This document shows positions 3,294-59,555 of a stretch of DNA of 64,000 nucleotides, in pieces. Below the pieces are notes generated by a model. The model was not told the origin of the DNA and did no database searches. It worked only from the letters and a program-made list of their open reading frames with translations. The translations under genes and the position numbers were made by a program. Position 1 is the stretch's first letter. Each line of letters begins with the position of its first letter. Source of the DNA: Mobula birostris (Eukaryota); contig NC_092375.1 in NCBI RefSeq assembly GCF_030028105.1, positions 39,283,130 through 39,347,129 on the forward strand, given 5' to 3'.

Positions 3294-5120
3294 ATAGAAA
3301 CATAGAAACATAGAAAATAGGTGCAGGAGTAGGCCATTCGGCCCTTCGAGCACCGCCATTTATTATGATCATGGCTGATCATCCAACTCAGAACCCCGCC
3401 CCAGCCTTCCCGTCATACCCCCTGACCCCCGTAGCCACAAAGGCCATATCTAACTCCCTCTTAAATATAGCCAATGAACTGGCCTCAACTGCTTCCTGTG
3501 GCAGAGAATTCCACAGATTCACACTCTCTGTGTGAAGAAGTTTTTCCTAATCTCGGTCCTAAAAGGCTTCCCCTCTATCCTCAAACTGTGGCCCCTCGTT
3601 CTGGACTTCCCCAACATCGGGAACAATCTTCCTGCATCTAGCCTGTCCAATCCCTTTAGGATCTTATACATTTCAATCAGATCCCCCCTCAATCTTCTAA
3701 ATTCCAACGAGTACAAGCCCAGTTCATCCAGTCTTTCTTCATATGAAAGTCCTGCCATCCCAGGAATCAATCTGGTGAACCTTCTTTGTACTCCCTCCAT
3801 GGCAAGGATGTCTTTCCTCAGATTAGGGGTCAAAACTGCACACAATACTCCAGGTGTGGTCTCACCAAGGCCTTGTACAACTGCAGTAGTACCTCCCTGC
3901 TCCTGTACTCGAATCCTCTCGCTATAAATGCCGGCATACCATTCGCCTTTTTCACCGCCTGCTGTAGCTGTATGCCCACTTTCAATGACTGGTGTATAAT
4001 GACACCCAGGTCTCGTTGCACTTCCCCTTTTCCTAATCGGCCACCATTCAGATAATAATCTGTTTTCCTATTTTTGCCACCAAAGTGGATAACTTCACAT
4101 TTATCCACATTAAATTGCATCTGCCATGAATTTGCCCACTCACCCAACCTATCCAAGTCACCCTGCATCCTCTTAGCATCCTCCTCACAGCTAACACTGC
4201 CCCCCAGCTTCGTGTCATCCGCAAACTTGATGCTGTATTTAATTCCCTCATCCAAGTCATTAATATATATTGTAAATAACTGGGGTCCCAGCACTGAGCC
4301 TTGCGGTACCCCACTAGTCACCGCCTGCCATTCTGAAAAGGTCCCGTTTATTTCCACTCTTTGCTTCCTGTCTGCTAACCAACTCTCCACCCACACCAAT
4401 ACATTACCCCCAATACCGTGTGCTTTAAGTTTGCACACTAATCTCCTGTGTGGGACCTTGTCAAAAGCCTTCTGAAAATCCAAATATACCACATCCACAG
4501 GTTCTCCCCTATCCACTCTACTAGTTACATCCTCAAAAAATTCTATGAGATTCGTCAGGCATGATTTTCCTTTCACAAATCCATGCTGACTTTGTCCGAT
4601 GATTTCACCGCTTTCCAAATGTGCTGTTATCACATCCTTGATAACTGACTCCAGCAGTTTCCCCACCACCGACGTTAGGCTAACCGGTCTATAGTTCCCC
4701 GGTTTCTCTCTCCCTCCTTTTTTAAAAAGTGGAGTTACATTAGCCACCCTCCAATCCTCAGGAACCAGTCCAGAATCTAACGAGTTTTGAAAAATCATCA
4801 CTAATGCATCCACTATTTCTTGGGCTACTTCCTTAAGCACTCTGGGATGCAGACCATCTGGCCCTGGGGATTTATCTGCCTTCAATCCCTTCAATTTACC
4901 TAACACCACTTCCCTACTAACATGTATTTCGCTCAGTTCCTCCATCTCACTGGACCCTCTGTCCCCTACTATTTCTGGAAGATTATTCATGTCCTCCTTA
5001 GTGAAGACAGAACCAAAGTAATTATTCAATTGGTCTGCCATGTCCTTGCTCCCTATAATCAATTCACCTGTTTCTGTCTGCAGGGGACCTACATTTGTCT
5101 TTACCAGTCTTTTCCTTTAT
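3294..5120 (-). mobile_element. CR1-clade LINE, 5'-truncated, relatively young (RT domain to 3' tail)
   Basis: ORFs 3830..5062 and 3519..3845 contain YRPVSLTS, LDFQKAFDKVPH, GVPQGSVLGP and KFADDTK. The 3' stem-loop GGGCCGAATGGCC is followed by a (TTTCTATG)n tail. Confidence 0.96.
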
Positions 5121-5127
5121 ACAGTAT

Positions 5128-7949
5128 ATGATTGCATGAAGTATAAGAAATAAAGTAGATGAGCTTGAGACACAGTTGGAAATTGGCAAGTATGATGTTG
5201 TGGGGATAACAGAAACGTGGCTTCAAGTGGACAGGGCCTAGGAAATGAATATTCAAGGGTATACATCCTATCAAAAGGACAAACTGATGGGCAGAGGGGG
5301 TGGGGTGGCTCTGTTGGTGAGGAATGATATTCAGTCCCTTGCGAGGGGGGGACATAGAATCAGGAGATGTAGAGTCAGTATGGATAGAACTGAGTAATTC
5401 TAAGGGTAGAAAGACCCTAATAGTTATCTACAAGCCCCCAAAAAGTAGTCTGGATGTAGGGTGCAAGTTGAATCAAGAGTTAAAATTGGCATGTTGCAAA
5501 GGTAATGCTACAGTTGTTATGGGGGATTTCAACATGCAGATAGACTGGAGGAATCAGGTTGGTACTGGACCCCAAGAAAGGGAGTTTGTGGAGTCCCTCT
5601 GAGATGGATTCTTAGAACAGCTTGTACTGGAGCCTACCAGAGAGAAGCAAATTCTAGATTTAATGTTGTGCAATGAACCGGATTTGATCAGGGACCTCAA
5701 GGTAAAGGAACCATTAGGAGGTAGTGACCATAATATGATAAGTTTTAATCTACAAATTGAGAGGGAGAAGGGAAAATCAGAAGTGTCAGTATTACATTTG
5801 AACAAAGGGAACTATGGTGCTATGAGGGAGGAGCTGGCCAAAGTTCAACGGAACAATATCCTAGCAGGGATGACAGTGGAACAGCAATGGCAAGTGTTTC
5901 TGGGAATAATGCAGAAAGTGCAGGATCAGTTCATTCCAAAGAGGAAGAAAGATCCTAAGGGGAGGCCATGGCTGACAAGGGAAGTAAAGGACAGTATAAA
6001 AATAAAAGAGAAGAAGTATAACATAGCAAAGATGAGCAGGAAGCCGAAGAATTGGGAAACTTTTAAAGAGCAACAGAAGATAACTAAAAAGGCAATACGT
6101 GGAGAAAAAATGAGGTACGAAGGTAAACTAGCCAAGAATATAAAGGAGGCTAGTGAAAGCTTCTTTAGGTATGTGAAAAGGAAAAAAATAGTTAAGACTA
6201 AAATTGGGCCCTTGAAGACAGAAACGGGTGAAATTATTATGGGGAACAAGGAAGTAGCAGACGAGTTGAACAGGTACTTTGGATCTGTCTTCACTAGGGA
6301 AGACACAAACATTCTCCCAGATATAATAGTAGCCAAAGGACCTAGGGTAATGGATGAACTGAAGGAAATTTATATTAGGCAGAAAATGGTGTTGGATAGA
6401 CTGTTGGGTCTGAAGGCTGATAAGTCCCCGGGACCTGATGGTCTGCATCCCAGGGTACTTAAGGAGGTGGCTTTAGAAATCATGGACGCATTGGTAATCA
6501 TTTTCCAATGTTCTATAGATTCAGGATCAGTTCCTGTAGATTGGAGGGTGGCTAATGTTGTCCCAGTTTTCAAGAAAGGAGGGGGAGAGAAAACGGGGAA
6601 TTATAGACCGGTTAGCCTGACGTCAGTGGTGGGAAAGATGCTGGAGTCAATTATGAAAGATGAAATTACAACACATTTGGATAGCAGTAACAGGATAGGT
6701 CCGAGTCAGCATGGATTTACGAAGGGGAAATCATGCTTGACTAATCTTCTGGAATTTTTTGAGGCTGTAACTATGAAAATGGACAAGGGAGAGCCAATGG
6801 ATGTAGTGTACCTGGACTTTCAGAAAGCCTTTGATAAAGTCCCACATAGGAGACTAGTGGGCAAAATTAGGGCACATGGTGTTGGGGGCAGAGCACTGAC
6901 ATGGATTGAAAATTGGCTGGCTGACAGGAAACAAAGAGTAGTGATTAACAGGTCCCAGTGGGGTACTGCAGTGTTCAGAGCTGGGACCACAGCTGTTTAC
7001 AACATACATTAATGATTTGGATGAAGGGATTAAAAGTAACATTAGCAAATTTGCAGATGACACAAAGCTGGATGGCAGTGTGAAATGTGAGGAGAATGCA
7101 GGGTGACTTGGACAGGCTGGGTGAGGGGGCGGATGCATGGCAGATGCAGTTTAATGTGGATAAATGTGAGGTTATCCACTTTGGTGGTAAGAACAGGAAG
7201 GCAGGTTATTATCTAAGTGGAGTCAAGTTAGGAAAAGGGGAAGTACAACAAGATCTAGATGTTCTTGGACATCAGTCACTGAAAGCAAACATGCAGGTAC
7301 AGCAGGCAGTGAAGAAAGCTAATGGCATGCTGGCCTTCATAACAAGGGGAATTGAGTATAGGAGCAAAGAGGTCCTTCTGCAGCTGTACAGGGCCCTGGT
7401 GAGACCACAAATGGAGTATTGTGTGCAGTTTTGGTCTCCAAATTTGAGGAAGGACATTCTTGCTATTGAGGGAGTGCAGTGTAGGTTCACAAGGTTAATT
7501 CCCGGGGTGGCGGGACTGTCATATGTTGAAAGATTGGAGCGACTGGGCTTGTATACTCTGGAATTTAGAAGGATGAGAGGGGATCTGATTGAAACATATA
7601 AGATTATTAAGGGATTGGACACGCTGGAGGCAGGAAGCATGTTCCCGCTGATGGGTGAGTCCAGAACCAGAGGCCACAGTTTAAGAATAAGGGGTAGGCC
7701 ATTTAGAATGGAGTTGAGGAAAAACTTTTTCACCCAGAGAGTGGTGGATATATGGAATGCTCTGCCCCAGAAGGCAGTGGAAGCCAAGTCTCTGGATGTT
7801 TTCAAGATAGAGATGGATAGAGTTCTTAAAGATAGTGGAATCAAAGGTTATGGGGATAAGGCAGGAACTGGATACTGATTGTGGATGATCAGCCATGATC
7901 ACAGTGAATGGCGGTGGGCCAAATGGCCTACTCCTGCACCTATTGTCTA
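5128..7949 (+). mobile_element. CR1-clade LINE, 5'-truncated (APE endonuclease, RT, 3' end), frameshifted
   Basis: Endonuclease motifs (ETW, VYKPP, MGDFN, SDHN), RT motifs in 5663..7012 and 7087..7878, 3' end CCTACTCCTGCACCTATTGTCTA. Confidence 0.96.
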
Positions 7950-25770: not shown

Positions 25771-27119
25771 TGAAAGATCATTATTAGGAGAGAGTGTCAA
25801 TCGATAACACAACTAAAAGAGTGGAACTAATTCTGTGAACTATGGTCCTTTCAAGATACACTCAATATTCAGATCTCATGGTCAAATAATGTAGTTTACT
25901 TAAAATAAAGTAGATTGAATGAAACTGGTGGGCTGACTAGTTAGTTCACATATATTATTTACTTTAAGGCTGTCATCATCCATAATCCTTTTATTCTGCC
26001 ATTCTTTTGGTATTCTGACACTAAATTATTAAAGGATATGTAAATTGGAAACTGAAATATATTTTCCTATGCACATTGGGAAAATGAATTAGAAAAAAAT
26101 AATCAGGATTTCAAAGAATTCTTGATATGGTCATCACATCAGAAAGATGCCCAAGAGAGTTTCTGTTGCTTTTTTTGCATTAAAGGAATGACTGAAAATG
26201 TATACAAATTGAAAATTTATTCAGGTCAACAGTGTTTCTCCTCATTCTACATTCCAAAAGAGAGCATCCCAGTCACTTCGACTTTAATAGAAGCATTTTC
26301 TATTTCTACAGTAAAGAAAAGATGTGGAAGAAAACTCTGAATAAAGGGTTAACATATCTGAGTTTCTAGCACTCTGCACTTCCCTTCAATTAGCAATATG
26401 CCTCGTGCTGGCATTAGTGCATGGCACAGCTGCATAAACAAGGTGAAGGCAATGAAGGTTGTACAGGACTCTGGGCTGTAAAAGTTTCTGACAATTAAAG
26501 TGTCCTAGTTTTCACCTTACCTGGGGTACTAACATATATACCAAATTATACCTTTGTACTTTAATGACATTGCATCTAAGGGTTTAATGAACTATCTATA
26601 TATCATAAATAAAGATTTACCATTCGGCCTGGGTTCTCAGCATGCTTGAAATAATCTAACTTAGTTTCAAGGATGTTTAACAACCTATCTCTCTGTGTTG
26701 CAGGCAGACAAGAGACTGTTACTGGCATTTTCGTGGGAATTGAAAAGGAAAACAGAATTGAACTTTTTTTAAACTTTGATGTAATTGACTTTCTGTGTCA
26801 TGCTATGATTAATGTTCTTTGGAAGACTTGATGATTGCACTGTTTGCGAGTCATTCTTCCCTTATTCATGAATAAAGGTATTCTCTAGTCACTTCAAAGT
26901 CTGTAACCAACTTTAATTGAATTTCCTTAGCGAGTTAATTTCCCTAACAAAAGATTACCCTTAATGTTTCAGAGCTTAGATCAAAGTTGTCCAATTTCAT
27001 CCATTAACCATGAAGTGAGGAAGAGGGAAAATGAAAATTATATCTGAACGATATTCAGGAAAACCAAAGATAGGCCATTTATGAAATAATATGAGTTAAC
27101 AGAGTTTTAAGAACAGGAA

Positions 27120-27480
27120 AAGATGCTGAATGGTTATGATAAGCTTCTGTAAGAAAACAAAACTAGCAAAACAGGTATCCGGATGTAGTAGATCTGGATT
27201 TTCAAAAGGCATTTCATAAAGTTTCATAAAAAAAATTATTAATTAAAATAAAAGCCTGCAACAGCATTTATTGACAAGGATAGAGAACTTGTTAAAGAAC
27301 AAGAAACACGGACAGCAGAAATGAACAGATCCTATATTTAAAGATTATGTTAGTGGCTTGGGCCTATGAAACACAATTTCAAAATTGGCAGATGAAACAA
27401 AATCTGCAAATACAGTAAACTGTGAGATAGTGATCAGCTTGTCAATGAGAGAATGGGAGCAGTCAGAAAATGAGAACATA
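27120..27480 (+). mobile_element. Highly decayed CR1 RT fragment
   Basis: gtagtagatctggattttcaaaaggcatttcataaagttt (YLDFQKAFDKV-like) and aaattggcagatgaaacaaaa (KFADDTK-like). Confidence 0.6.
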
Positions 27481-27619
27481 GACAAAAGTTTATTGTGCGT
27501 TTTTTCCCCTTTTTATGCCTTTTCTTCTCCTCTGGATGTGGAACACATGCCCAGCTTGTCTATGGGACATGTCCTTCTGTCTCCTGCTGGCTCCTGCTCA
27601 AGTCTTCCTTCTGCCATTT

Positions 27620-27760
27620 TGAATACTAGCTATTTCTTCACCTCTTCTGTTTCTTTCCAGCCAAGATGAAGGCCTCAACCCAAACATCAACTGTATATAT
27701 CCCTCCATAAATGCTGCCTGACTAATTGAGTTCCTCCAGTGGTTTGTGTGTTGCTACATT
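27620..27760 (+). repeat. PLE 3' terminal fragment with decayed hammerhead
   Basis: ttccagccaagatgaaggcctcaacccaaacatcaact...atgctgcctgactaattgagttcctccag. Confidence 0.65.
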
Positions 27761-28451
27761 TTTTCTATGTTCCCTTGACTACATTCTCACTCTCTCAGTG
27801 CTCCCATTCACTGATTGACTTGCTAACCCTGTTAACAGCCTATCCCCATGGTCATCCCCCTTCCCCATCTGATCAGTACCATCCTTAATACTTGTGCTTC
27901 CCACTAAGAGGACCTTTCAGTAGGTGTGTTTGTTCAGTTTCATTTCTGCCCTGTTCAGAATCTGATGATGTGGAAAAAGCGCTTGCAGTTGCCCATGTGC
28001 TGTAAGTGAGCTTAAAAATATTTTGACATTGCGAGATGGGTAGACTGAGGAACAGACAAAATAACTTTTTCCAGTTGCTACTATTGGTTTCTTCAATAAC
28101 AATGTAAACTGGAGAAAGAATAGCGCCATTATGCAAATGCAAGACTTAGCCTAGAAAGTTTGCTGCTAAAAATCTCCTCGCCCAAACTATCATTTCACCT
28201 AGAGTAACAAAATGGTACAAACCAACATTAGGGAATTTAGCTCTTTAGAACAACTGTATACAAGCAGTGTCCTTGAACAATGAAACTGGTGTATGATATG
28301 TCCAGAGAGCAATGACGACTGGCATTAGTACGACCATGAGGAATCCAAGAAATAAGAAATGGAAAAACCATAGACAAGATACAAGATTGCTCAGTGCAAA
28401 ACCACCAATCAACATCCAATAGACCAGAAAACAATATCAAACCTTGGCTAT

Positions 28452-28690
28452 TATTATGTACTTTATATTTCAATAATATTTGAGTTATTTTATATAGTTT
28501 GATTAAGCATTCTCCTTCTAAAAATTAGGTATGGGTTATATGTAAAAATACATTAATCGGATATGTCAACACACTACCACGTGATACATGTGTGCCCTGC
28601 TTAAAGTAAACTCAAAGTTAGACCAGAATTCCTTGACTCCCGTGTCTTCCTTTGAATTAGTTTAATGTTTTGAAGGTATAAAACACAACA
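28452..28690 (+). repeat. 5' LTR (~239 bp)
   Basis: Start (tattatgtactttatatttcaataatatttgag...gtttgattaagcattc) aligns with 29553-29619; ends in CA directly before the PBS. Confidence 0.8.
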
Positions 28691-28691
28691 T

Positions 28692-28709
28692 TAGTGACAA
28701 GGATGGGAC
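28692..28709 (+). promoter_or_regulatory. Primer-binding site complementary to tRNA-Ser(GCU) 3' end
   Basis: TAGTGACAAGGATGGGAC vs expected TGGCGACGAGGATGGGAT (14/18; two differences are CpG transitions). tRNA sequence is recalled. Confidence 0.7.
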
Positions 28710-28720
28710 AAGGATAACCT

Positions 28721-29262
28721 CTGGTTGATAAACATATTGGACCAAGGAAGATCCATGCTATTCAGAAGAATCATGGAAGTGACGAAAGCCATGGTCTGAC
28801 TACATCAGTTTTTGTAGACAACATATCTAAGAAAGCTTCTGATATGTTAATCAGGCAGTTACTTGTAAAAAATGGCTTGGTTTTAAGCTGGAAGAGAACT
28901 CAAAGAGCTTCAGGAAAGTTGCAGGTATTCAGTTTTTGCGAGTGTAAAGAACCAGAATCTACCCTGCGCACATTAAGGTTATTGCATGAACTTCAAGTGA
29001 GAGGCCAAAAGCTATTGTAAAAGTGGATGTAAAGACCAAATCCAAACTGGATGATTAGAAGGTCAAAAAGAAAGGAGTCAATGGAGATACAAAAATGGAG
29101 GAATCATCAGATGATGTTGTGAATAAGGAAACCAAGAGGAGAGATCAGATCATAAAGGGGGCAATAGAAGAATTAATAAGAAAATACTCCAGTTTACAAA
29201 ATGCATCTTCACAAGATCGAGTTGCACAAACTGGAAGAAGATGAGAAAAGGAGAAGAAAGAT
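28721..29262 (+). pseudogene. RBM25: Processed (intron-less) RBM25 fragment: pre-RRM linker, RRM and following charged region
   Basis: VDKHIGPRKIHAIQKNHGSDESHGLTTSVFVDNISKKASDMLIRQLLVKNGLVLSWKRTQRASGKLQVFSFCECKEPESTLRTLRLLHELQV...VKVDVKTK...ETKRRDQIIKGAIEELIRKYSS is collinear with human RBM25 as recalled (TTTVFVGNISEKASDMLIRQLLAKCGLVLSWKRVQGASGKLQAFGFCEYKEPESTLRALRLLH...ETKRRDQMIKGAIEVLIREYSS). 1-nt deletion at 29017/18; stops at 29056 and 29242; no start codon ahead of the RRM. Confidence 0.93.
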
Positions 29263-29539
29263 GTCCAGAGCTATCAGAACCACTTCCTGTGTTTCAGAGT
29301 CAACTCCTACAATCACCACGGAGACAGCGCCAGAACCTGATATTGTTTCACAGCCACATGTCTCTTCTGCCAAGCAGAGTGATGCCCTTTGTCAGGAAAG
29401 ACATATGCAATTAATGTATCTTTACATATAACCTGTAATTAATTACTATGCTGTGGGTGTCTGTATATAGTAGTTGTATTATTTAGTATACTGTGTATAT
29501 AATTGAGATGCATTTTCTGTTGAGTTAGAGTTTATAGCT

Positions 29540-29619
29540 AAGCAGGGAGAGGTGTTGGGTATTTAATATTTTAGTAATATTTGAGTAATCTTGAAAATAT
29601 ATTGTTTGATAAGGCATTC
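29540..29619 (+). repeat. Polypurine tract plus truncated 3' LTR
   Basis: AAGCAGGGAGAGG immediately followed by TGTTGGGTATTTAATATTTTAGTAATATTTGAG. Confidence 0.8.
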
Positions 29620-30129
29620 AGCTGTAGTTTCATGGAGGGAAGTTACAATGATAGCTCTAATCATTGAACTCTTACTGACATCCTTCCAGGAATAAGAAAA
29701 TAACTTCAAAAGTTTTGTGGTAACATGAGACTATTCAGCACCTTGGTTACATTGTTGTCTGAAGATATGGCTTGCTTTGCAAATTTGTAATTCTCATATG
29801 ATCTGGAATTTTGGAAGTCTGTAATGCTCAGGCATTGGCATCAAATTCCCACCAAAATATTGGGAATTTGATGCCAATGTTTTGTGGTCACAAATGAATT
29901 TGCTCCTCAAAAAATCTTGCTGCTTATCAAAAACTGTAAGCACTGGATGTTACTGGAGTAGATTTTCCAGTCCTAAACCTGGGCAATTGAATTATCTAGA
30001 CACAACAATATGGAAAATGTAGTGAAAAAGACTGTAAAGCAGTCAGCAAGCCCTTCAGTTTTTTGATTACATATTTCTTTATCCTTAACCCATATGTAGT
30101 GACTTAAAATTAAAGATTGGCTTTTTTTT

Positions 30130-30406
30130 ATTGAGAGAACGTACAGTGATATGCGTCATTTGCTTCAAATAAAATCAGCGAGGAGCGTGCAGCCCACAAG
30201 TGTTGCCATGCTTCCGGCACCAACATAGCATGATCAAAACTTACTAATGCTGACCCTACCATACGTCCATGGAAAGTGGGACGGAACCCACGCGGTCACG
30301 GGGAGAGTTCACAAACTCGTTACGGGCAGTGGCCGGAATGAAACCCTAACCAGAGATCAGTAACCCTGTGAAGCAGTTGAACTAACTACTACACCACTGA
30401 GCCACC
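30130..30406 (-). mobile_element. V-SINE-like tRNA-derived SINE
   Basis: Minus head GGTGGCTCAGTGGTGTAGTAGTTAG; V-domain-like TTTGTGAACTCTCCCCGTGACCGCGTGGGTTCC. Confidence 0.7.
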
Positions 30407-30889
30407 CAGACTTTTACCCTTTCCGAAATCCTCTCTCTTAAGCTTTACTTAATATGTGCCAGACTAGTTTGGTGACGGTCCATCCCTTAATATCAAAGTC
30501 TTTTGCTTCAAATACTTTCTCCTGCCTTTAAGCTCTCACCAGATTGTAATCTTCTCCTGTTTCCTCAACAAGCCAAATCTCAGGTTCTTCCCCAAGATCT
30601 ACTTCCTTCTTTCCATTCTCATTACATCCCATTTCCACCTGAATTCACCTTGCTACCCCTCATTGGTTTCATTGTCACTTGTGCTCCAGTTACTGCTCCT
30701 TCAGGTACCATATCTAGCTCACAACCAGGTTAACCAACCTTCACAAGATTAGGTGTGAATAAAAACAAAAGAATGGTCATCACTGAACGTATAGCCAGGA
30801 AGAGCTCTTTGAATGAACTATCCAATCAGTTTCTCACACTACCCCACAATTCCCTATGTTCTTTCTGCATATTTTTCAATACTTCCCCT

Positions 30890-31246
30890 CTCTGGACAGA
30901 GTGGATGGGGCAAATTTGTTTCCCATGGTAGGGGAGTCTAGTACGAGAGGGTATGGCTTAAGGATTGAAAGGCACCCATTCAGAACAGAGATGCAAGGAA
31001 ATTTTTTCAGCCAGAGGGTGGTGAGTCTGTGGAATTTGTTGCCACGGGCGGCAGTGGAGGCCAAATCATTGGCTGTATTTAAGGCAGAGATTGATAGGTA
31101 TCCGAGTAGCCAGGACATCAAAGGTTATGGTGAGAAGGTGGGGGAGTGGGACTAAATGGGAGAATGGATCAACTCATGATAAAATGGTGGAGCAGACTTG
31201 ATGGGCCGAATGGCTGACTTCTGCTCCTTTGTCTTATGGTCTTATG
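30890..31246 (+). mobile_element. CR1 3' end
   Basis: ORF 30856..31155 (LFPMVGESSTRG...NFFSQRVVSLWN); tail CTTATGGTCTTATG. Confidence 0.9.
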
Positions 31247-58104: not shown

Positions 58105-59555
58105 TTGCAAACGGAGAGGGAAGAAGTACTGAGGGAGTGTTTGTGGGTTCATTTGATGGCGGAGGGGAAGAAGCTGTTCCTGAAACATTCCGTGTGTGTC
58201 TTCAGACTGGTATAGCTCATCTTTGAAAGTGATGGGAAGAGGTCACGCCCTGGGTGATTGGGTCTCTTATTGATGGATGCTGTCTTCCTGAGGCATGGCC
58301 TTTTGAAGGTGTCCCTGATGCTGGGGAGGGTAGAGCCCATGATGGAGCTGGTTGAGTTTACAACTCTCTGTAGCTTTTTCCAATCCTGCACAGAGGCCCC
58401 TCCATATCAAACAGAGCTGCAATCAGTTAGAACGCTCTCCATGGTACATCCATAAATACTTGTGTCTGCCTTCTCAAATTCCAAATGAAATATAGTCACC
58501 GTCGTGCCTTCTTTGTAATTGCACCCATATATTGGGCCCAGGATAGATCCTCAGAGATGTGGACACCCAGGAACTTGAAGCTACTTGCCCTTTCCACTTC
58601 TGATCCCTCGATGAGGACTGGTGTGTGTTCCCTCGACTTCCCCTTCCTGAAGTCCACAATCAATTCCTTGGTCTTATTGACATTGAGTGCAAGGTTGTTG
58701 CTGTGATACCACTCAACCATCTGATCTATCTCACGCCTGTATGCTTCCTCATCACCATCTGAAACTCTGCCAACAATAGTTGTGTCGTCAGCAAATTTAT
58801 AGATGGCATTTGAACTGTGCCTATCCACACAATTGTGGGTGTCAAGAGGGCAGAGCGGCAGGCTAAGCTCATATCCTTGACGTGCGCCAGTGTTGATTGT
58901 CTGTGAGGAGGAGATGTTGCTTCCAATCTGCACAGATGGGTTTCCCAGTGAGGAACTCAAAGATCCAGTTGTAGAGGAAGGTGCAGAGACCCAGGTATTC
59001 GAGCTTTTTGATTACAGCTGAGGGTATGATTGTGTTAAAGCTGAGCTCTAGTCAATAAACAGCATCCTATCCTGATGTAAGCATTACTATTGTCCAGGTG
59101 ATCTAAGGCCAAGTGGAGAGCCTGTGAGATTGCATCTGCTGTAGACCTATTGTGGTGACAGACAAATTGCAGTGAGTCCTGGACCTTGCTTAAGCAGGAG
59201 TTGATTCTAGCTATGACCAACTGCTCAAAGCACTTCATCGGAGTAGGTATGGGTGCAACGATAGCTGTTAAGGCAGCTGACCCTGCTCTTCTTGGGCACT
59301 GATATGATTGTCGCCTTTTTGAAGCAGGTGTGAACCTCCGACTGTAGCAGTAAGGGATTGAAGATGTCCTTGAACACTCCTGCCAGTTAGTTGGCACAGG
59401 TTATCAGAGCCCCACGAGATACATCAGAAAGGTATTCTGACATTGGCCTCTGAGACAGAGATCACAGGGTCAACAGGTGCTGCAGGGATTTGCAGAGGTG
59501 TAGATTTATTCTCCCTTTCAAAGTATGCATAAAAGGTGTTGTGCTCATTTGCTGC
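58105..59555 (-). mobile_element. Rex1/Babar-type LINE (RT and downstream region)
   Basis: ORFs 58496..58960 (LSLPLCPLDTHNC...YKFADDTTIVG), 59035..59397 and 58149..58391. Confidence 0.9.

Follow-up and report, generated by a model that had tools for sequence, protein, structure and literature searches.

A decayed LTR retrotransposon carrying spliced RBM25 exons in Mobula birostris is one copy of a multicopy family

The element and its surroundings

Within a 64,000-nucleotide stretch of Mobula birostris DNA, hereafter the window, positions 28452 to 29619 or 29620 hold a compact chimeric element. Read from left to right, it consists of a 5′ long terminal repeat (LTR), a stretch resembling a primer-binding site (PBS), 546 nt of the host gene RBM25, a 276-nt tail, a polypurine tract (PPT) and part of a second LTR (Table 1). 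A first-pass annotation had described the LTR, the RBM25 stretch, the PPT and the start of the second LTR, and our own reading of the sequence located every one of these parts where it had placed them.

Table 1 Features of the RBM25-bearing element, in window positions
Feature	Positions	Strand	Remarks
5′ LTR	28452-28690	+	239 bp; starts TA (TG in the other LTR and in the family), ends CA
PBS-like stretch and linker	28691-28717	+	27 nt; TTAGTGACAAGGATGGGAC, then a GACAAGGAT-like duplicate; TAA at the end
RBM25 exon A, 3′ 150 nt	28718-28867	+	...GKHIGPRK...IRQLL; begins 21 nt into the exon
RBM25 exon B	28868-28925	+	58 nt, KNGLVLSWKR..GKLQ; intron-bounded in L005
RBM25 exon C	28926-29085	+	From translations, L005 exon limits and L004 collinearity
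RBM25 exon D	29086-29263	+	Homology stops 2-3 nt before the exon 3′ end
Tail	29264-29539	+	Without a detected homologue; 1-nt indel at 29289 relative to most copies
PPT, AAGCAGGGAGAGG	29540-29552	+	Adjoins the TG start of the 3′ LTR
3′ LTR, first 67-68 nt	29553-29620	+	TG start; aligned to the 5′ LTR; repeat depth stops here

In a BLASTN comparison of the region with the 64-kb window, the LTR pair appears as a 61-nt direct repeat with 75% identity (E 3.6e-6), and the same comparison returned no other copy of the element in the window. The LTR termini are of the TG...CA type, as read from the start of the 3′ LTR and the finish of the 5′ LTR, the 5′ LTR start having decayed to TA. The PBS-like stretch is a 17-mer lying 1-2 nt past the end of the 5′ LTR, and it may correspond to tRNA-Ser(GCU), with 14 of 17 positions matched and three transition mismatches. 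A scan for tRNA genes found none in the 64-kb window, and no tRNA or Rfam family was found in 27000-31000. This copy has neither gag nor pol, and the full-length element would measure about 1.34 kb were both LTRs whole. With its direct LTRs and a PPT adjoining the 3′ LTR, it is an LTR retrotransposon at the level of order.

An inverted repeat of 45 nt (84%) relates 28523-28567, which are LTR positions 72-116, to 29400-29444, between the tail and the PPT; the inverted LTR segment could pair in a transcript with the U3 region of the 3′ LTR, across the PPT. The repeat prompted us to consider a DIRS/Ngaro-type element, a candidate we rejected on the grounds that LTRs of the family end in plain TG...CA and have heterogeneous flanks.

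The neighborhood holds features of its own. Just 3′ of the element, in single-copy DNA, a perfect 19-bp inverted repeat with a 9-nt loop (29833-29879) folds at -32 to -34 kcal/mol, with z about -5.5 on both strands and weak matches to miRNA models (E 0.3-0.5). Two other high-copy repeats lie at 27601-27802 and 30126-30330, where the summed contig depth described below is 10^3-10^4 versus about 9 in the flanks. Read on the minus strand, the second of these has a SINE-like look; its A-run end lies near 30120-30130, and it has no tRNA or Rfam match. Farther out, open reading frames match Pfam RVT_1 at 3830-5062 (minus strand, E 3e-33), 5663-7012 (plus strand, E 7e-17) and 58496-58960 (minus strand, E 3e-7); these are probably LINE remnants unrelated to the RBM25-bearing LTR family.

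Identity and condition of the RBM25 part

The internal region opens with a 100-codon piece free of stops (28718-29017), which gives a weak Pfam RRM_1 match (E 1e-3; 19.4 bits versus a gathering score of 20.7). Against a representative protein library it returned 351 matches at E ≤ 1e-3, with RBM25-like proteins at 69-70% identity over 99 of the 100 residues (E 1e-33). RBM25-specific sequence ahead of the RRM is included in the match—GKHIGPRK, for instance, is common to the element and to the genomic exon on contig L001—and because the similarity covers such sequence outside the RRM, we rejected a chance resemblance to RRMs. An RRM with flanking RBM25-specific sequence, collinear with orthologues, identifies the host gene RBM25 as the source. 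Six library matches with long extra sequence beside the RRM were considered as element-RBM25 fusion proteins and set aside: all were either gene-model fusions or RRM or RBM25 proteins of the ordinary kind.

Homology to RBM25 begins at 28718 and ends at 29261-29263. A 1-nt deletion near 29014-29018 interrupts the reading frame, beyond which RBM25 similarity resumes in another frame up to ...EKEKKD at 29262. Collinearity in the sense orientation, proposed in the first-pass annotation, extends over 546 nt, through the EKKD end of exon D. Three-frame translation also places in-frame stops at 29056-29058 (TAG) and 29242-29244 (TGA), while a TAA at 28715-28717 stands directly upstream of the RBM25 part and no ATG precedes the RRM. 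The translations thus bear out the earlier description of a disabled copy, with its frameshift, its stops and no ATG ahead of the RRM: the copy is without coding capacity, and dead.

A spliced origin

Exon limits were taken from genomic RBM25 genes. Genomic exon A was obtained from Logan contigs L001-L003, reached via the library protein match P0104, and is 80-81% identical to the element at the nucleotide level over 28718-28865; past this exon the gene reads CG/gtaagt, where the element reads exon B. Contig L005, the RBM25 gene of Coregonus sp. 'Balchen' (GCA_902810595.1), is interrupted by introns at four points, namely behind ...QLLA, one base past ...GKLQ, behind ...ANG and behind ...EKKEE, and L006, a second teleost RBM25 gene, agrees with the limits of exons A and D. 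In the window the corresponding exon junctions fall at 28867/28868, 28925/28926 and 29085/29086, and all three are crossed by the element with no intron sequence. The junction positions are also in agreement with predicted proteins in which these RBM25 introns are read into or skipped, and L004, a transcript contig, runs collinear with the element over 28806-29261.

The match therefore spans four exons, and is neither a single exon nor contiguous genomic RBM25, a point the first-pass annotation had singled out for checking. When the two flanks of the RBM25 part were compared, they had no word of 6 nt or longer in common and no A-run of 5 or more. The claim of a spliced-mRNA origin thus holds, with three exon junctions crossed and neither poly(A) nor target-site duplication around the RBM25 part, and the same combination makes both a DNA-level capture and a classical LINE-made pseudogene unlikely.

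A multicopy family in several organisms

Public contig sets from five organisms were aligned to the region at 80% likeness, one of them (X1) being the source organism's own DNA run. Summed contig depth in these alignments is not a copy number; the count of distinct contigs per position goes up to 128. In X1 the unique flanks have a depth of about 9, and 28452-29620 is highly repeated throughout. Summed depth is 2,600-75,000 over the 5′ LTR and 65,000-104,000 at the LTR ends, and falls from 104,000 in 29520-29620 to 10.5 from 29621 on. RBM25 bins range from 1,400 to 27,500, with a mean of about 10,700 (X1), and the tail, at 6,500-46,000, has about twice the depth of the RBM25 part. Each RBM25 position is covered by 57-127 distinct contigs in each of X1, X12 and X16, and X5 and X9 are similar. 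We take these figures to mean that RBM25-bearing copies number from hundreds up to roughly a thousand, with tails about twice as numerous and LTRs amounting to several thousand.

That the element might be one member of a multicopy non-autonomous family had been raised as a possibility, and contig depth together with distinct contigs now supports it strongly. A capture of RBM25 at this locus itself is contradicted by the presence of the family in several organisms. Further family copies were sought in metagenome contigs at the protein level and in metagenome and viral contigs with a 28-nt family pattern, and none was found in either.

Between this copy and long pieces of others the divergence is about 18%. 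Where a majority-difference threshold was applied, the family majority has another letter than this copy at 65 of 760 places, or about 8.6%. At 32 of the 65, an A or T in this copy faces a G or C in the family, the GC-to-AT pattern that the decay of a dead copy should leave. In exon A, the majority letter is that of the host exon at 7 of the 8 places where the majority differs from this copy, so that the family stands closer to the RBM25 gene than this copy does. Many LTR contigs of the family skip or replace about 77-93 nt at 28558-28634, passing from 28557 to 28635, 28643 or 28651, which indicates that LTR length varies within the family.

Age and ends of the insertion

A contig of organism B (X5) bridges the unique flank and the LTR over 28206-28557 with 8 differences, the flanks of organism B being about 1.7% different. 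It carries the same insertion at the same site; the insertion predates the split of A and B and is several times older than that split. Orthologous loci in related animals had been recommended for inspection, and this bridging contig supplies one.

The LTR limits are also seen from the family at large. The similarity of hundreds of contigs breaks off at precisely 28690 and 29553, giving way to heterogeneous sequence with an agreement of 0.34-0.35, as is expected of 5′, 3′ and solo LTRs at many genomic sites. In several organisms, the flanks at these loose ends give a weak consensus, ATGGTWAC/TG...CA/GTWACCAT, which suggests that the family integrates at a palindromic target with a 5-bp duplication. 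At this copy, GCTAT (28447-28451) precedes the 5′ LTR and GCTGT (29621-29625) follows the truncated 3′ LTR, which finishes ...GGCATTCA. The two match at 4 of 5 letters and may be a target-site duplication, with an internal CA serving as the element end, or a chance resemblance.

Two junctions of different standing

The passage from PBS to RBM25 is thinly shared. Depth over 28692-28717 collapses to 352 in X1, 851 in X12 and 583 in X16, versus thousands on either side, and many alignments begin exactly at 28717-28720. Several contigs (X12 record 9, X16 record 17, X9 record 25) carry 100-229 nt upstream of 28718 that resemble neither this linker nor the LTR. Together, the depth collapse and the different upstream sequence indicate that most family members differ from this copy upstream of 28718. 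The PBS-to-RBM25 junction had been offered as part of the element's structure; with a depth of 352 and unrelated sequence in its place in other contigs, it is not the norm for the family. Most simply, we infer, the junction is a secondary one, an internal deletion in this copy or in a subfamily of a few dozen. Six contigs of X22, a putative RNA run, have host-like exon A sequence upstream of 28718 and represent either host transcripts or longer family copies.

The RBM25-to-tail junction differs in kind. Depth continues across it, and contigs reach 24-27 letters past it (X12 record 16; X22 records 30 and 32), while among the contigs listed none satisfies a bridging rule of 31 letters on both sides. 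It is likely to be family-wide. Measured on teleost reference exons, it lies 2-3 nt from the 3′ end of exon D and is followed directly by GT. For L005 the exon boundary reads GAGAAGAAGGAGGAG/gt, for L006 GAGAAGAAAGACGAG/gt; at this point the element has GAGAAGAAAGATG and then unrelated sequence. A search with the exon D peptide for genomic exon D and its intron from a close relative yielded no candidates.

As for the tail, searches of 29264-29539 against Pfam, by protein words and in the ESM Atlas gave no match. The first-pass reading of the tail as a Gypsy pol C-terminus, which would occupy 29264-29414, is a putative one. It is probably native to the element, and its depth, about twice that of RBM25, is a hint in that direction.

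Origin of the chimera

The anatomy of the element, the spliced origin of its RBM25 part, the size of its family, its presence in multiple species, the orthologous insertion and the decay of this copy are the observations that any account must accommodate. In our judgment this is most likely a dead, 3′-truncated and probably internally deleted copy of an old, abundant, non-autonomous LTR family that carries a spliced piece of RBM25. A fragment of host RBM25 would have entered the RNA or cDNA of an LTR element a single time, in an ancestral lineage shared by at least five of the organisms sampled. The resulting chimera would have kept the signals needed in cis—LTRs, primer site and PPT—while an autonomous relative may have supplied proteins in trans, leading to roughly a thousand genomic copies. 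The copy in the window would then have inserted before the split of organisms A and B, later undergoing about 8.6% of decay and losing the greater part of its 3′ LTR. For this copy, which has neither gag nor pol, non-autonomy and mobilization in trans are presumed, and Ty3/Gypsy, the first-pass label, is a putative superfamily.

How RBM25 and element sequence came to be joined admits two serious answers. The first-pass annotation proposed a retrocopy made by microhomology-guided template switching; its LTR-flanked arrangement and spliced mRNA source stand, but a random switch is weakened by the 3′ junction lying 2-3 nt from an exon end. Recast as two such switches of reverse transcriptase between co-packaged element RNA and RBM25 mRNA at the origin of the family, with a putatively shared GAAGAAAGAT-like run at the start of the tail, the proposal is quite conceivable, if somewhat short of probable. 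A partial mRNA between both LTRs, with neither poly(A) nor target-site duplication, is just what is seen in LTR-mediated retrocopies (PMC5131818), and the 3′ junction falls within a purine run, GAGAAGAAAGATG, that offers possible microhomology and could have favored a switch at that point. Yet by a rough estimate a random switch would land this near an exon end about 5% of the time, and the 5′ junction, the other proposed switch point, is in this copy probably secondary. The closeness of the 3′ junction to an exon end makes a splice-mediated fusion or a retained intron a serious rival. The exon D donor may have been spliced to an acceptor in an element situated downstream within an RBM25 intron, the chimeric read-through transcript later recombining once with element RNA; alternatively the tail may be unspliced RBM25 intron. 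We hold this origin by RNA processing to be possible, if rather doubtful. It needs only one non-homologous switch, and it would account for homology that stops within 2-3 nt of the end of exon D in two reference genes and for the GT that comes next, although GTCCAG makes a poor donor consensus and the element lacks the final 2-3 nt found in the reference exon. The exon limit is moreover taken from teleosts rather than the source species, and a tail about twice as deep as RBM25 fits a segment shared with RBM25-less elements better than an intron.

Other routes fare less well. A processed pseudogene of RBM25 made by a LINE, landing in an existing LTR element and amplified later, is very unlikely: the LINE-type reverse transcriptase reading frames in the same window show that suitable machinery exists in this genome, but the fragment is internal to the mRNA, stops in mid-coding sequence and has no 3′ UTR, poly(A) or flanking direct repeat. 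Least credible of all is an event confined to this locus, whether a single LTR-mediated retrocopy or the capture of RBM25 from genomic DNA. Taken by itself, the anatomy of the copy would allow such an event; against it speak the distinct contigs at each position (57-127 in X1, X12 and X16, with X5 and X9 alike), the orthologous insertion in organism B and, for a DNA-level capture, the three absent introns. Improbable, finally, is the idea that the RBM25 module was kept and amplified as useful to the element, as a gag-fused RNA-binding aid to packaging or as a decoy in splicing control, having perhaps entered via read-through splicing. Were that so, vertebrate LTR elements would have a second way of acquiring exons, through the splicing of read-through transcripts that join host and element.

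Comparison with known systems

The copy in the window is ordinary, and the old, abundant family to which it belongs deserves note as an instance of something already known, the transduction of host genes by LTR retrotransposons. In animals, such transduction is on record mostly as rare, young and low-copy events, and carriers of gene fragments have been known from plants. A vertebrate family with four spliced exons of a splicing factor, in about a thousand copies and in several species, illustrates how widely a chimera of this kind can spread. Among the papers searched, none connects RBM25 with an LTR retrotransposon in this manner, and none does so for cartilaginous fishes. For those annotating these genomes there is a practical consequence: false "RBM25-like" gene models and RRM matches will arise from the family.

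Set beside established classes, the RBM25 family shares something with each. Like a LINE-mediated processed pseudogene it holds an intronless copy of a host mRNA, but it lacks poly(A), the mRNA 3′ end and a target-site duplication of the host part, and is embedded in, and co-amplified with, LTR sequence. TRIM and LARD elements are likewise short, with LTRs, PBS and PPT, no coding capacity and mobilization in trans, the last presumed here, whereas the internal region of the RBM25 family is recognizable host coding sequence. Oncogene transduction by acutely transforming retroviruses, for which read-through, splicing and recombination during reverse transcription are the proposed steps, offers another parallel, with spliced host exons replacing internal genes and dependence on a helper. 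The RBM25 family, in contrast, is a germ-line genomic repeat rather than an exogenous virus, and its insert has no evident selective function.

The maize element Bs1 is a low-copy one. Bs1 and other LTR elements bearing gene fragments resemble the RBM25 family in being non-autonomous, with host fragments in place of their own genes, and in spreading as pseudo-retrotransposons (PMC5131818; PMC2774510; PMC13317346). Compared with such plant elements, the RBM25 family sits in a vertebrate at high copy number.

The closest relatives are the products of LTR-mediated retroposition, which is known in flies, mosquito, zebrafish, chicken and mammals (Tan et al. 2016, PMC5131818). In those retrocopies, as here, a partial intronless mRNA lies in one orientation between discontinuous parts of an LTR retrotransposon, and the host part has neither poly(A) nor target-site duplication. 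They are, however, young and present in single or few copies, whereas the RBM25 chimera is old, found in multiple species and amplified to roughly 10^3 copies. Their fusion points are marked by microsimilarity. One of the RBM25 fusion points sits at an exon end—a handle on whether splicing, besides template switching, loads host exons into LTR elements.
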